From sequence record ON529855.1: 64,000 bases of DNA. One strand, written 5' to 3'. Made by a program: the position numbers and the translations under genes. The first letter of the stretch is position 1. Every line of letters starts with the position of its first letter. This document shows, one piece after another, positions 4,842 to 55,250 of this stretch. Below the pieces are notes generated by a model. That model did not search any database, was not told the DNA's origin, and saw only the letters and a program-made list of their open reading frames with translations.

Positions 4842-4870
4842 ACTATAAGCAGGGTTTCGACTTTTGTCAA
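4842..4870 (-). promoter_or_regulatory. strong sigma70-type promoter
   Basis: TTGACA (4870-4865), 17 nt spacer, TATAGT (4847-4842). Confidence 0.85.
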
Positions 4871-46463: not shown

Positions 46464-46515
46464 GTGCGGGATGTAGAGGACTGCGCGGTGCGTGTCAACC
46501 CTCTCGGTCAGATAA

Positions 46516-46596
46516 TGGCGGGGACGGAGGGAATCGAACCCCCTGGATGACGCCTTCGGAGGGCGTTGCCTACATTCCGGTCGGCACTTCGCCCCC
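46516..46596 (-). tRNA. tRNA-Arg(CCG), atypical D arm
   Basis: GGGGGCG/CGTCCCC acceptor, ACGCC-CTCCGAA-GGCGT anticodon arm, TTCGATT loop, CCA encoded. Confidence 0.85.
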
Positions 46597-46629
46597 GAGG
46601 CGGTGGGCCGGACAGGCCGGCAGAAAGAG

Positions 46630-46711
46630 TGGCGCCCAAGGCAGGATTTGAACCTGCGTTTGCAACTCCGCTACGGATAAGGCCTTCGTAGGACCCCTCG
46701 GTTACTTGGGC
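46630..46711 (-). tRNA. atypical tRNA, probably Arg(ACG): no D arm, double-hairpin variable region
   Basis: Perfect GCCCAAG/CTTGGGC acceptor, canonical T arm, GGGTC-CTACGAA-GGCCT anticodon arm, CCA. Confidence 0.55.
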
Positions 46712-46714
46712 ATT

Positions 46715-46798
46715 TGGCTCCTATGAGAGGACTCGAACCTCTAAGTCTTGCGACGGTCGATTAACAGTCGACTGCGTTTACCATTCCGCCACATAGGA
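46715..46798 (-). tRNA. tRNA-Asn(GTT) with long variable arm
   Basis: GTCGA-CTGTTAA-TCGAC; variable hairpin GTC-GCAA-GAC; CCA. Confidence 0.9.
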
Positions 46799-46823
46799 AC
46801 AAACTGAATACTGATATTTTACC

Positions 46824-46897
46824 TGGTTCTGGCTCTAGGAATCGAACCTAAATCTCGGAGACCAAAACTCCGCGTGATACCGTTACACTAAGCCAGA
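46824..46897 (-). tRNA. tRNA-Gln(TTG)
   Basis: CGGAG-TTTTGGT-CTCCG; TCTGGCT/AGCCAGA acceptor; CCA. Confidence 0.9.
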
Positions 46898-46908
46898 TCA
46901 GGAAAACT

Positions 46909-46986
46909 TGGTAGGAGGTACTGGATTCGAACCAGTGAAATGTCGGTATGTGAAACCGATGCCTTGGGCCGCTTGGCGAACCTCCC
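46909..46986 (-). tRNA. tRNA-Val(CAC)
   Basis: TCGGT-TTCACAT-ACCGA; A73; CCA. Confidence 0.9.
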
Positions 46987-47030
46987 ATGCAAGAGCAGCG
47001 AATCTCCACTGCTCAGGGACAAAGTAAAGT

Positions 47031-47107
47031 TGGTCCTAGCACCAGGATTTGAACCTGGGACCGAGCGGTTATCGACCGCGCGCTCTACCAAACTGAGCTA
47101 TGCTAGG
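47031..47107 (-). tRNA. tRNA-Ile(GAT), C at position 33
   Basis: GCGG-TCGATAA-CCGC; canonical D and T arms; CCA. Confidence 0.9.
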
Positions 47108-47111
47108 GCTG

Positions 47112-47186
47112 TGGTAGCGGATACAGGAATCGCACCTGTGCATGTCGGCGTGTCATACCGATGCCTTTCTACTTGGCTAATCCGCC
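47112..47186 (-). tRNA. tRNA-Val(GAC)
   Basis: TCGGT-ATGACAC-GCCGA; T loop TGCGATT; CCA. Confidence 0.85.
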
Positions 47187-47199
47187 ACACAGAAAAGTG

Positions 47200-47274
47200 T
47201 GGCCCACCCAGGAGCGCTCGCATCTCCGTCTCGGGGATTTCACTCCCGCGCTAATCTGTCTCAGCTATGAGTGG
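47200..47274 (-). tRNA. tRNA-Phe(GAA), divergent
   Basis: CGGGA-GTGAAAT-CCCCG; CCACTCA/TGGGTGG acceptor; T loop TGCGAGC; CCA. Confidence 0.7.
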
Positions 47275-47275
47275 A

Positions 47276-47359
47276 TGGTGGGAAGGGAGAGAATTCGCAC
47301 TCTCACAGCTTGCGCGGGGGATTTACAGTCCCCTGGGCTCACTCGTGCCCAGCCTGCCC
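47276..47359 (-). tRNA. tRNA-Tyr(GTA)
   Basis: GGGGA-CTGTAAA-TCCCC; long variable arm; CCA. Confidence 0.9.
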
Positions 47360-47372
47360 AAAATGTTACGGC

Positions 47373-47390
47373 TCAGTCGCCGCCGGTCAT
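47373..47390 (-). CDS. mini-ORF MTGGD
   Basis: AGGAG SD 6 nt before ATG ACC GGC GGC GAC TGA, between the terminator and tRNA-Tyr. Confidence 0.35.
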   Translation of the reverse strand: MTGGD

Positions 47391-47419
47391 GGTGATCTCC
47401 TGGATCAGATGAAGGTGTT

Positions 47420-47460
47420 GAAACGGAAAAGGCCCGCCTGGCGGAAACCAGGCGGGCCTT
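47420..47460 (-). terminator. attenuator terminator in front of tRNA array A
   Basis: AAGGCCCGCCTGG-TTTCCG-CCAGGCGGGCCTT followed by TTCCGTTTC. Confidence 0.9.
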
Positions 47461-47491
47461 CGAAACTTGGGAGTTCTAAGTGGGTATCAGA

Positions 47492-47587
47492 TTAAATCTG
47501 CGTCCCACCATCGCCCATGCACGAATGGCCCGCCCGGTTAAACCGGACGACCTGAATCTGCTGCACGTTGTTGCGATAGGTGAACAT
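47492..47587 (-). CDS. attenuator leader peptide A (MFTYRNNVQQIQVVRFNRAGHSCMGDGGTQI), probably leaderless
   Basis: ATG lies 7 nt after the -10 box; codons 2-18 match the downstream tRNA identities. Confidence 0.8.
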   Translation of the reverse strand: MFTYRNNVQQIQVVRFNRAGHSCMGDGGTQI

Positions 47588-47594
47588 GAGAAGA

Positions 47595-47623
47595 CGTTTA
47601 CTACAGGCGACGACCAGTGTCAA
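47595..47623 (-). promoter_or_regulatory. promoter of leader A / tRNA array A
   Basis: TTGACA (47623-47618)-N17-TAAACG (47600-47595). Confidence 0.75.
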
Positions 47624-47625
47624 CA

Positions 47626-47841
47626 TTATTGTCGTCTATGGACCCAAGTTTTTTCGAGGGCGCTGTCCCAGGTCCCCCAGTTGCAGGGATCAGGGTAGTC
47701 CCGATAGCGCCAGCCGCCGCAGTAACGGCACATGGCTTCGGTCTGGTCAGCCTCAGCGGGATGCGGCTCGCAGTCCCCCGAGACGTCGCACAAAGGCCAC
47801 CCGTCCGGCCCCAGGGTGGGGTCGTCGTCCGGGTCCGTCAC
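47626..47841 (-). CDS. hypothetical Cys-containing protein (71 aa)
   Basis: GTG overlapping the upstream TGA; CxxC (CRYC). Confidence 0.5.
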   Translation of the reverse strand: MTDPDDDPTLGPDGWPLCDVSGDCEPHPAEADQTEAMCRYCGGWRYRDYPDPCNWGTWDSALEKTWVHRRQ

Positions 47842-48134
47842 AGGGTGTAATCGACGGTCGGGTCGGGAAGCCAGACCTCTTCCAGCAGACGTTCCTGCCA
47901 CTGGGCCTCGTGGTCCCAGGACAGGATCACGCCGGACCGCGTTTCGCTGCCGTCGATCAGCGTCGCGCAGCCGTAGACGTCAAAGGGCGGCGCGCCATCA
48001 TAGGAATGGTGGCGCAAGGTATAGAGATGGGGACCGTTGCCGCCGCACCAGCGCACCAGGACTTTCGCCCCGTCAGGCAGGGCGCGGATTTCGGCCGGGG
48101 TCAGCCTCGGGGTATCGGGGACGGCGTGGGTCAT
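47838..48134 (-). CDS. hypothetical protein (98 aa)
   Basis: Translationally coupled (TGATG) in a small-gene operon. Confidence 0.65.
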   Translation of the reverse strand: MTHAVPDTPRLTPAEIRALPDGAKVLVRWCGGNGPHLYTLRHHSYDGAPPFDVYGCATLIDGSETRSGVILSWDHEAQWQERLLEEVWLPDPTVDYTL

Positions 48135-52154: not shown

Positions 52155-52372
52155 TGGTGGAGGCGAGGGGATTCGAACCCCCGTAGACGCCGAACCCTCG
52201 CATTACCAAGGGCCGATCTCAGGTTTAGAACGCGTGTGCCGCCCTGACCATCTTCCGCAGGCCAGGGGGTCTATCGTAACGACCCCGTCGATCGGTTGCC
52301 TCTGCGTCCCGGATTTACCCGGACCGTTGCTCTGTTCCACGGTGCTCATGCCGAAACCCGAGCGACGCCCCC
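52155..52372 (-). ncRNA. 218-nt tRNA-like RNA with Ala-type acceptor (G3.U70, A73, CCA)
   Basis: 5' GGGGGCG pairs with 3' CGCCTCC-ACCA; T arm GGGGG-TTCGAAT-CCCCT; about 140 extra nt in several hairpins; flanked by short spacers like its tRNA neighbours. Confidence 0.75.
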
Positions 52373-52476: not shown

Positions 52477-52665
52477 TCAGGCCGAGGCCGGACTGTAGTT
52501 GTCGATGTCGTCGACCCGGATCGCCGTGCCCGCCGCAATCTGGCGGTCGGCGCTCAACAGTTCGGCGACCAGGTCGTCGGCCGTGACGGCGGCGCCGGAG
52601 GTGGCGAACTTCACGTTCACCAGGCGGCCGTCAGCGAACATCTCGTCGATCGCGGCGCGATCCAT
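52477..52665 (-). CDS. hypothetical protein (62 aa) embedded in the tRNA array
   Basis: GAAAGG SD; MDRAAIDEMFADGRLVNVKF... Confidence 0.6.
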   Translation of the reverse strand: MDRAAIDEMFADGRLVNVKFATSGAAVTADDLVAELLSADRQIAAGTAIRVDDIDNYSPASA

Positions 52666-53821: not shown

Positions 53822-53953
53822 TTACAGGAAACCTTCCAGGGAGACGCCACCGGTGGTGGGGGACTTCGTCGACAGTTTCGGCGCATGCGCGAGCGTCGAC
53901 AGCGCCGTGGCGGCGGTCGAAAGCGGGCTCAGCTTGTGCGACAAGGTGGTCAC
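53822..53953 (-). CDS. attenuator leader peptide B (MTTLSHKLSPLSTAATALSTLAHAPKLSTKSPTTGGVSLEGFL)
   Basis: GTG start with weak GGA SD; codons 2-34 use only T/L/S/H/K/P/A, the identities of array B. Confidence 0.8.
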   Translation of the reverse strand: MTTLSHKLSPLSTAATALSTLAHAPKLSTKSPTTGGVSLEGFL

Positions 53954-54005
53954 GATGAAGGTCCAGTCCGAAGAAGGAGCGCAAATGCGCTGTGATGAAG
54001 TCTGA

Positions 54006-54034
54006 TCTCTACAGGAAGCTTGAGCGTATGTCAA
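54006..54034 (-). promoter_or_regulatory. promoter of leader B / tRNA array B
   Basis: TTGACA (54034-54029)-N17-TAGAGA (54011-54006). Confidence 0.7.
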
Positions 54035-54973: not shown

Positions 54974-55039
54974 TTAGGCGGCGGTCGTATCTCGGCCCTG
55001 GAAGGCCTCTCGTTCGTAGCTGGTCAGACGGTAGGTCAT
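54974..55039 (-). CDS. putative leaderless 21-aa peptide (MTYRLTSYEREAFQGRDTTAA)
   Basis: ATG 6 nt after TTGACA-N17-TACAAG (55074-55046); precedes tRNA-Glu/Asp. Confidence 0.4.
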   Translation of the reverse strand: MTYRLTSYEREAFQGRDTTAA

Positions 55040-55070
55040 TTGTCGCTTGTATCAGAACTGTCGGTGGGTG

Positions 55071-55250
55071 TCAAGAAGGACGGCGAATCTTTTTGGACCT
55101 TGCATGGGGTCGGTCTTCCTCGGCCTCAGGCTCGGCCGCGTCCCAGGCCATCCACAGGGCCGCGAGAAAAGCAGGCGGACCCATCAAGTCTTCCAACCGC
55201 TTCAAGGCCCGGTCGTTGGCCGCCAGGAAGGCGTCGCCGTATTCAAGCAT
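55071..55250 (-). CDS. hypothetical protein (59 aa, not in ORF track)
   Basis: GAGGT SD; MLEYGDAFLAANDRALKRLEDLM... Confidence 0.55.
   Translation of the reverse strand: MLEYGDAFLAANDRALKRLEDLMGPPAFLAALWMAWDAAEPEAEEDRPHARSKKIRRPS

Follow-up and report, generated by a model that had tools for sequence, protein, structure and literature searches.

Leader peptides control a number of amino acid operons by transcription attenuation, among them trpL, hisL, thrL, leuL, pheL, and the leader ilvL of ilvGMEDA, which has 32 codons and is multivalent for Ile, Leu, and Val. In Escherichia coli, the operon for phenylalanyl-tRNA synthetase, pheST, is attenuated by the pheM leader. T-box riboswitches bind uncharged tRNA directly and need no open reading frame (ORF). 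Phage tRNA genes are usually viewed as a passive compensation for codon usage or as a replacement for host tRNAs lost in infection, and to our knowledge the control of their expression is essentially undescribed. Here, we analyze Leader A, an element located at positions 47420 to 47623 of a 64-kb window of sequence record ON529855.1, directly 5' of nine tRNA genes that we refer to as array A. The window, by which we mean the whole stretch of DNA that was analyzed, belongs to Brevundimonas phage vB_BpoS-Domovoi (352.7 kb, Dolichocephalovirinae; 100% identity), and all coordinates given below are positions within it; Leader A and array A are both on the minus strand. We propose that Leader A probably belongs to the trp/his/ilv class of ribosome-mediated transcription attenuators, acts on a leaderless mRNA, and controls the phage tRNA operon. 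The evidence base is sequence and predicted RNA structure throughout, and it comes from a single phage subfamily, in which we count about six independent lineages.

Leader A resembles the trp/ilv-type attenuators in having a short ORF between a promoter and an intrinsic terminator, clustered regulatory codons, and mutually exclusive predicted pairings (1:2, 2:3, and 3:4) with segment 1 in the ORF. It is closest to the multivalent ilvL, the two being of similar length (31 to 32 codons). Unlike these attenuators, whose classical scope includes aminoacyl-tRNA synthetases, Leader A would target tRNAs rather than biosynthetic enzymes. It is also phage encoded and predicted to be leaderless, it samples seven amino acids and nine isoacceptors, the strand that forms its antiterminator is part of the coding sequence, and the antiterminator hairpin has the stop codon at its tip. 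As in pheM-pheST, the leader peptide would control a component of translation for the same amino acid that is sensed, whereas pheM responds to a single amino acid, has a synthetase as its product, and belongs to a leadered mRNA of a cellular gene. With T-boxes, Leader A would share a transcription antitermination of translation-related genes that depends on tRNA status; unlike them, it has an ORF and matches no T-box or other Rfam model. An Rfam cmscan of positions 47420 to 47623 (E ≤ 1 and E ≤ 10) gave only subthreshold chance matches, with no T-box and no other family among them. Overall, the predicted structure of Leader A has the features of the attenuator class, with moderate support for the antiterminator.

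Two further systems come close. Canestrari et al. (10.1101/834739) report leaderless polycysteine short ORFs of mycobacteria, in which ribosome pausing reshapes the RNA and unmasks a ribosome-binding site, and use the term "ribulon." Leader A is similar in its predicted leaderless sensory ORF and in the pausing proposed at cognate codons, with several loci sharing one signal in mycobacteria; the polycysteine ORFs reportedly differ in that they act on translation and not on an intrinsic terminator, respond to a single amino acid, and precede metabolic genes. The alpha-proteobacterial rnTrpL/peTrpL of Sinorhizobium is reported to be a leader-peptide attenuator with additional roles for both the terminated RNA and the peptide (PMC6614838, PMC7968998). 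Leader A would likewise release a terminated RNA, of about 165 nucleotides (nt); the trans-acting roles are reported for the Sinorhizobium products. In the phiCbK genome paper, Rfam gave no RNA elements besides tRNAs (PMC3556154), and the Brevundimonas phage paper makes no mention of the Leader A element (PMC10070969). A full-text literature search returned no relevant account of attenuators or leader peptides for phage or cellular tRNA genes.

Organization of Leader A and its codon match with array A

Read along the minus strand, the locus consists of a promoter, a 31-codon ORF, a strong terminator, and the nine tRNA genes, in this order. It is located between a conserved, unannotated coding sequence (CDS; 47901-47626) and the run of tRNA genes. 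The promoter, which we identified from the sequence (47595 to 47623, minus strand), combines the -35 box TTGACA (47623-47618) with a 17-nt spacer and the -10-like hexamer TAAACG (47600-47595). The leader ORF (47492 to 47587, minus strand) starts with an ATG at 47587-47585, contains 31 sense codons (MFTYRNNVQQIQVVRFNRAGHSCMGDGGTQI), and ends with a TAA at 47494-47492. As an earlier, sequence-only reading of this DNA had pointed out, only 7 nt (tcttctc) separate the hexamer from the ATG. This distance is invariant in the 17 phages that we read (11 distinct sequences), and in all 11 sequences the 7-mer is pyrimidine rich and lacks a Shine-Dalgarno motif. The 7-nt gap predicts that the Leader A transcript is leaderless. 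Translation of such a transcript would be plausible in the hosts, because efficient leaderless mRNAs are common in Caulobacter: C. crescentus has 375 of them, translated as efficiently as leadered ones (PMC4117421). A consensus scan found no promoter-like site from the terminator to the first tRNA of array A. In GenBank, the locus is annotated as a hypothetical protein of 44 amino acids, DOMOVOI_04760, whose ATG overlaps the -35 box. We rejected this ATG as the start shared by the family, since in Kikimora a TAG directly precedes TTGACA.

Array A (46519 to 47359, minus strand) was assembled from ARAGORN, Rfam, relaxed ARAGORN, and visual reading, and comprises nine tRNAs. Five of them, Val-GAC, Ile-GAT, Val-CAC, Gln-TTG, and Asn-GTT, are standard ARAGORN calls. 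The first two genes, Tyr-GTA (47359-47276) and Phe-GAA (47274 to about 47190), are non-canonical, carry a TGCGA T-loop, and are found only at a relaxed ARAGORN threshold; the stems of both covary between Domovoi and CcrPW. The Arg-ACG-like gene (46711-46633) is degenerate, including its D-arm, and has the anticodon loop CT-ACG-AA; like Arg-CCG (46596-46519), it scores above the Rfam gathering score. All four of these genes are unannotated in GenBank and missed by default ARAGORN. According to the phiCbK genome paper, tRNAs for Tyr or Thr occur in no phage (PMC3556154). The order Tyr-Phe-Val-Ile-Val-Gln-Asn-Arg follows Leader A in every relative, and no CDS follows array A until the next promoter at 46498.

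Codons 2 to 18 of the leader ORF form what we call the sensor block (47534 to 47584, minus strand). Here the sequence-only reading had listed the downstream tRNAs, including a putative Arg(ACG), had matched 16 of these 17 codons to them, and had judged such a match improbable. Our analysis agrees on each count: the tRNA set is recovered by ARAGORN, Rfam, and relaxed ARAGORN together, ACC is the only codon left unread, and the binomial probability of the match is 1e-7 when Domovoi codon usage is taken into account (p = 0.314, the share of codons read by array A tRNAs in 14 annotated Domovoi CDSs). The sensor block is the single best of 92,380 stop-free 17-codon windows (six frames, 64 kb), and no other locus in the 64 kb exceeds 15/17 for the codons of set A. 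Each of the nine tRNAs is sampled at least once, which has a probability of 7e-5 for random CDS codons and of 0.13 once codons are restricted to the set. At the level of residues, 15/15 from Tyr4 to Arg18 belong to the set, versus 2/13 in the remaining ORF (Fisher P = 3.6e-6). The ORF gave no matches to PHROG, and its sole Pfam match, DUF1830 (E = 0.15), was below that family's cut-off. A search with the annotated 44-amino-acid form found only two protein clusters among 5.8 billion sequences, both from the same phage group. Rare A/T-ending codons are modestly enriched, ATT being invariant and TTT, TAT, and CAA frequent. We considered this enrichment as a feature that might confer sensitivity and set it aside as a hint only, as it is significant in RB23, PW, and phiCbK and not in Domovoi.

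A BLASTN search with the leader alone returned 45 phage records, all of them Dolichocephalovirinae of Caulobacter or Brevundimonas. We read the locus in 17 related genomes representing 11 distinct sequences, including those of phiCbK, Rogue, Colossus, PW, RB23, SC, and Bajun, and found Leader A in all 17. Common to all copies are a -35 box (TTGACA, TTGACC, or TTGACG), a hexamer mostly starting with TA, the ATG, and the terminator. The promoter spacer measures 17 nt (18 in CcrSC), and its sequence is unrelated between lineages. The ORF has 31 or 32 codons in all relatives, and indels are solely in frame, with one additional N-terminal codon in the phiCbK/RB23/SC group and one codon fewer in Rogue and BL10. 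Leader A always lies directly 5' of the same array; its upstream context varies from a CDS in Domovoi to the end of another tRNA array in phiCbK.

Within the sensor block, 15 codons follow the pattern Y-R-x-x-V-x-x-I-x-x-x-x-x-x-x, in which the x positions vary freely between lineages. The exchanges observed there (N/Q, N/F, Q/R, V/F, V/R, R/Q, F/N/V, and N/Y/I/F) are chemically non-conservative. For the relatives we preferred a test at the level of amino acids, because automated anticodon calls are unreliable for the Arg, Tyr, and Phe genes. By this test, 13 of the 15 derived states remain within the set {F,I,N,Q,R,V,Y}, compared with 24 to 29% expected for random non-synonymous changes (P = 5e-7 to 7e-6). 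The other two states, W and L (codon 18, PW and Colossus), fall in a base-paired column. Since the exchanges are non-conservative and nevertheless stay within the set, the constraint is one on which tRNA reads the codon and not on the peptide.

The element was also sought beyond the known relatives. A pattern scan of IMG/VR gave no genomes besides six already-known isolates, and a first pattern scan of metagenomes found nothing. A looser, structure-based pattern matched one metagenome and four metagenome-assembled genomes, and we discarded all of these matches as ordinary gene ends with G+C-rich terminators and no leader-like ORF. The sole tRNA near any of them, in L033, is on the opposite strand just beyond the terminator.

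Predicted alternative RNA structures and a proposed model for the switch

The terminator occupies positions 47458 to 47421 and consists of an 11-bp G+C stem, the loop TTTCCG, and a T-tract. Its 5' arm belongs to segment 3 (47448 to 47462; CGAA followed by GGCCCGCCTGG at 47458-47448), which is common to the antiterminator and the terminator, and its 3' arm is segment 4 (47421 to 47441; CCAGGCGGGCC at 47441-47431, then the T-tract TTTTCCGTTT). The stem has a predicted energy of -22 to -27 kcal/mol, and the terminator is annotated in the records of phiCbK, Swift, Karma, and Colossus. We measured covariation on an alignment of 13 sequences with 500 shuffles and five measures, one of which counts further pair types. 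The terminator stem was 99% paired and showed four compensatory pairs.

The competing structure uses segment 2 (47522 to 47537; CCGGGCGGGCC-A-TTCG, codons 17 to 22), the antiterminator strand inside the ORF. The sequence-only reading had described a terminator and had proposed that a segment of the ORF could pair with its 5' arm. Both hold: the 15-nt segment CGGGCGGGCC-A-TTCG (47536-47522) is complementary to CGAA-GGCCCGCCTG (47462-47449), and the helix gains one further C-G pair between 47537 and 47448. The resulting 15-pair helix is 92.3% paired across the alignment, with three pairs changed on both sides, and shifting the partner by one column lowers pairing to 52 to 60%. Compensatory changes are kept in CcrSC, Bajun, and Colossus. 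In CcrSC, the leader sequence TCGGACGGGCC is identical to the phage's own terminator 3' arm; in Bajun, an A in the leader pairs with a T of the 5' arm, the 3' arm keeping a G-U pair; and Colossus has a U-A pair where Domovoi has G-U. The predicted energy of the 2:3 duplex is -24 to -31 kcal/mol. When segment 4 was omitted, the antiterminator was the minimum free energy (MFE) structure in all 11 distinct sequences, and at full length the terminator form was the MFE structure in 10 of 11. Compared with dinucleotide shuffles, the Domovoi fold has z-scores of -4.9 at full length and -3.7 when truncated.

Inside the ORF, segment 1 (47543 to 47551, minus strand; GTCGTCCGG, codons 13 to 15) can pair with the start of segment 2 (CCGGGCGGGC, codons 17 to 20) in a 9-bp hairpin of the anti-antiterminator or pause type (RNAalifold consensus columns 41-49/53-61) of -11 to -14 kcal/mol. 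Its central four pairs are 98% paired and include two compensatory pairs, with G-C replaced by A-U in PW/Colossus and in RB23/SC. Taken jointly, the terminator and the 1:2 hairpin are 99% paired and show six compensatory pairs; no shuffle out of 500 was as good by any measure other than further pair types (125/500). A second small hairpin, CC-N-TTCG/CGAYGG, follows (RNAalifold columns 63-69/78-83, also in the Domovoi MFE structure). In Domovoi, it corresponds to CGATGG (47508 to 47513, codons 25 to 27), whose partner in the terminator form is CC-A-TTCG of segment 2. Because of the in-ORF 9-bp hairpin and the small hairpin that follows it, the predicted structure takes on the classical 1:2, 2:3, and 3:4 arrangement, the 1:2 hairpin being the element added here to the three parts described earlier. 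The conserved codons in the C-terminal half of the ORF coincide with these RNA pairing partners, namely, GCG/ACG-GGC-C and TCG in segment 2 and GAY-GG with TTCG.

Between segments 2 and 3, a stop-codon hairpin (47480 to 47508; GTGGG..CAGAT-TTA-ATCTG..CCCAC) has the TAA at its apex and makes up the tip of the antiterminator structure. RNAfold forms the nested GTGGG/CCCAC and CAGAT/ATCTG stems that had been proposed; of the TAA, which had been placed in the apical loop, we find two bases there and the third in the stem. For each of the 11 distinct sequences, a hairpin is predicted that holds the stop codon at or in its loop, although the stem sequences differ.

From the anatomy, conservation, codon-set constraint, and alternative pairings computed here, we infer where transcription would start, that the ORF would be translated, where ribosomes would stall, and in which direction the switch would work. 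Transcription would begin at or beside the A of the ATG and give a leaderless mRNA. A 70S ribosome would then translate the 31-codon ORF, the first 18 codons of which are drawn from the set read by the nine downstream tRNAs. With cognate aminoacyl-tRNAs plentiful, the ribosome would reach the stop codon, opening segment 2 and the stop hairpin; in its wake, the local 1:2 and 2b:2c hairpins would re-form, segment 3 would pair with segment 4, and transcription would end about 165 nt from its start. With a cognate tRNA scarce, the ribosome would stall within the block, most effectively with its A site at about codons 9 to 14, which in Domovoi are Gln, Gln, Ile, Gln, Val, and Val (Arg or Asn occurs at some of these positions in relatives). 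Such a ribosome would occupy segment 1, and segment 2 would remain available to capture segment 3 as it emerges, with the stop hairpin bringing the two segments together. No terminator would then form, and RNA polymerase would read into the array. Read-through would yield the very tRNAs whose shortage had caused the stall, and the circuit would provide a negative, self-limiting feedback on the tRNA supply of the phage.

The core of the sequence-only reading, a short and probably leaderless ORF of cognate codons that contains a segment able to pair with the terminator 5' arm, is in good agreement with all of the computational tests made here. Its proposal that a stall would expose the antiterminator is likewise consistent with the computed pairings. 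Its complement, that completed translation would mask the antiterminator, does not hold in physical terms, as a ribosome at the stop codon stands 27 nt past segment 2 and cannot cover it. After full translation, termination would more likely result from the melted stop-codon hairpin together with the re-formed local hairpins.

A second leader and the weighing of explanations

A second leader in the window, Leader C (53822-54034, minus strand), has its TTGACA promoter at 54034, a 43-codon ORF (VTTLSHKLSPLSTAATALSTLAHAPKLSTKSPTTGGVSLEGFL) at 53953-53822, and a terminator at about 53745-53715. Array C, which follows it, encodes two tRNAs each for Pro, Thr, and Lys, three for Leu, one each for His and Ala, and four for Ser. 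Among these, Thr-GGT, Thr-CGT, Lys-CTT, and Lys-TTT (about 53538-53468, 53461-53391, 53355-53265, and 53244-53170, respectively, minus strand) are unannotated and were missed by default ARAGORN. Codons 2 to 34 of Leader C, 33 in a row, specify only {A,H,K,L,P,S,T}, which are exactly the amino acids of array C. Among 71,777 windows scored for this set, the block alone ranks first, and it samples 15/15 tRNAs. Judged from their codons, the two leaders are reciprocal in specificity: of the 30 sense codons after the Leader A start, 18 match set A and 5 match set C, and of the 42 codons after the Leader C start, 34 match set C and 2 match set A. The restricted composition recurs in homologues of Leader C in Kikimora, Bajun, phiCbK (gp083), and Rogue (gp083). 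In Leader C and in these homologues alike, the loop of a hairpin holds the stop codon, and the antiterminator and the terminator arm covary. Because Leader C independently follows the same rule, coincidence or a peptide function is very unlikely for Leader A.

Several points weigh against the attenuator model as we propose it. Before segment 4 exists, the 2:3 pairing is 7 to 16 kcal/mol more favorable than an unpaired segment 3, and the default without a ribosome could therefore be read-through. The stop codon lies 27 nt beyond segment 2, so that for the step from full translation to termination we infer more than the pairings state, and the early codons of the block (codons 2 to 7; Phe, Tyr, Arg, and Asn) are too far 5' for a stalled ribosome to reach segment 1. 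Four of the nine array A tRNAs (Tyr, Phe, Arg-ACG-like, and Arg-CCG) are non-canonical or weakly scored. In the relatives, the strict codon-level match drops to 10 to 15 of 17 to 18 codons, a figure limited by unreliable automated anticodon calls for the degenerate Arg, Tyr, and Phe genes. The covariation of the antiterminator is modest, its values being reached by 4 to 24 of 500 shuffles for four of the five measures and by 103 of 500 for further pair types; in addition, the antiterminator of CcrPW contains an A-C mismatch or bulge, and the sample amounts to about six independent lineages. Finally, Leader B (54974-55074, minus strand), with TTGACA-N17-TACAAG, a 6-nt gap, and an ATG opening the ORF MTYRLTSYEREAFQGRDTTAA (55039-54974) directly 5' of tRNA-Glu and tRNA-Asp, had to be rejected as a third example: Glu and Asp account for only 3 of 20 codons, and no terminator follows the ORF.

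We weighed these data against other explanations of the locus. In one, the Leader A ORF would simply encode a small phage protein, served by a promoter and a terminator of its own and with an amino acid composition that reflects the function of the peptide, and the array would be expressed by leaky termination or from an unrecognized promoter; we regard this as highly improbable. It is true that GenBank lists a hypothetical protein here, that eight residues are invariant throughout the family (M1, Y4, R5, V8, I11, G20, S22, and D26), and that S-x-(M/V)-x-D is preserved in the C-terminal half amid synonymous variation. However, the conserved C-terminal codons are at the same time RNA pairing partners, and the non-conservative exchanges in the block remain within the tRNA set. 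Nor is there a protein family behind the ORF, with two clusters only in 5.8 billion sequences; Leader C obeys the same rule with another set of amino acids, and a strong terminator between the only recognizable promoter and nine tRNA genes would otherwise be hard to explain.

The switch between terminator and antiterminator might instead be real and set by a phage or host protein, uncharged tRNA, or another ligand, with the ORF being incidental or secondary. Such a model would not explain why the 7-nt gap is invariant, why indels are in frame and the ORF keeps its length, why the stop codon lies in a hairpin loop, or why the codon set is constrained, and the leader matches neither a T-box nor any other Rfam family. 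We consider it unlikely, even though the case for the alternative structures and their conservation does not depend on proof that the ORF is translated and the antiterminator is favored before segment 4, so that a factor stabilizing 1:2 could equally set the outcome. Roughly the same small probability goes to a ribosome-dependent element that reads general translation capacity or timing, for example, as an early-to-late switch when host translation changes, or that has the reverse polarity, with translation needed for read-through. The ambiguous default state without a ribosome, the possibility that leaderless initiation is itself regulated, and the modest enrichment of rare A/T-ending codons are compatible with a generic sensor of this kind. 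A generic sensor would, however, need neither codons limited to the downstream tRNA set nor the sampling of every tRNA, and it would not need a second leader with a disjoint set that matches its own array.

Attenuation by a translating ribosome, which we favor, would apply the logic known from biosynthetic operons to tRNA genes themselves and give a direct feedback from decoding speed to tRNA supply. The regulation is apparently modular, with sets of amino acids divided among arrays. We can envisage, as a possibility to which we attach less than even confidence, that the tRNA arrays of Dolichocephalovirinae are separate self-sensing regulons, each gated by a leader peptide that samples every isoacceptor of its array, and that the phage thereby senses, codon by codon, host tRNAs that are limiting or destroyed and replenishes that subset. 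The loss of tRNAs may in this case stem, for example, from host anticodon nucleases or from infection-induced loss. Such arrays, if they exist, would constitute a homeostat of the translation apparatus and possibly a counter-defense sensor, and neither cells nor viruses have a described system of this kind. If the attenuator model is correct, two families of conserved "hypothetical proteins," those of Domovoi 04760 and of phiCbK gp083, would become regulatory leaders, and several non-canonical tRNAs of Dolichocephalovirinae genomes would be identified. Infection of Caulobacter crescentus by phiCbK offers a tractable model for studying translation limits and the sensing of tRNA depletion in infection.

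Neighboring features of the window

The promoter architecture of Leader A recurs in the window. A pattern scan for TTGACA-N17-TA found eight sites, at 4870, 9020, 42098, 46498, 47623, 54034, 55074, and 56902, all on the minus strand, versus 0.15 expected (50-fold excess). At four of the eight, an ATG lies 6 to 8 nt beyond the hexamer, which suggests that Domovoi makes frequent use of leaderless mRNAs. The ORF of Leader B, whose promoter is the site at 55074, has the start M-T-Y-R in common with Leader A.

The CDS upstream of Leader A is a 91-codon ORF (47626-47901, minus strand) that is kept in Kikimora and Gurke, where it is annotated, and in Bambus; it carries CxxC-type motifs (MCRYCGGWRYRDYP). 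We had first taken an A-rich stretch 5' of the -35 box for an "UP element" and dropped this idea, because the stretch encodes the conserved C terminus of the upstream gene, LEK[T/S]WVH (Domovoi, Kikimora). The TAA of the 91-codon ORF overlaps the ATG with which the 44-codon leader annotated in GenBank starts (TAATG). Because of this overlap, transcripts from upstream could, in the Domovoi group, yield an extended leader through translational coupling.

The gap between the Leader A terminator and the first tRNA contains a mini-ORF with a strong Shine-Dalgarno motif (47373 to 47401, minus strand; AGGAG-N6-ATG ACC GGC GGC GAC TGA, five codons). It encodes MTGGD in Domovoi and Kikimora, whose copies differ by one synonymous change; PW, Colossus, Rogue, BL10, and BL57 have MNNGG instead, RB23 has MTGN, and phiCbK and Bajun lack the mini-ORF.

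Two observations concern array C. Inside its cluster of Ser tRNAs, positions 52155-52286 (minus strand) match the Rfam transfer-messenger RNA (tmRNA) model with 32 bits, below the gathering score of 47; ARAGORN makes no tmRNA call at this position, and the match may represent a tRNA-like or degenerate element. Array C also contains a short CDS (52478-52664, minus strand) that begins with MDRAAIDEMFADGRLVNVKF and separates tRNA-Ala from the Ser tRNAs.

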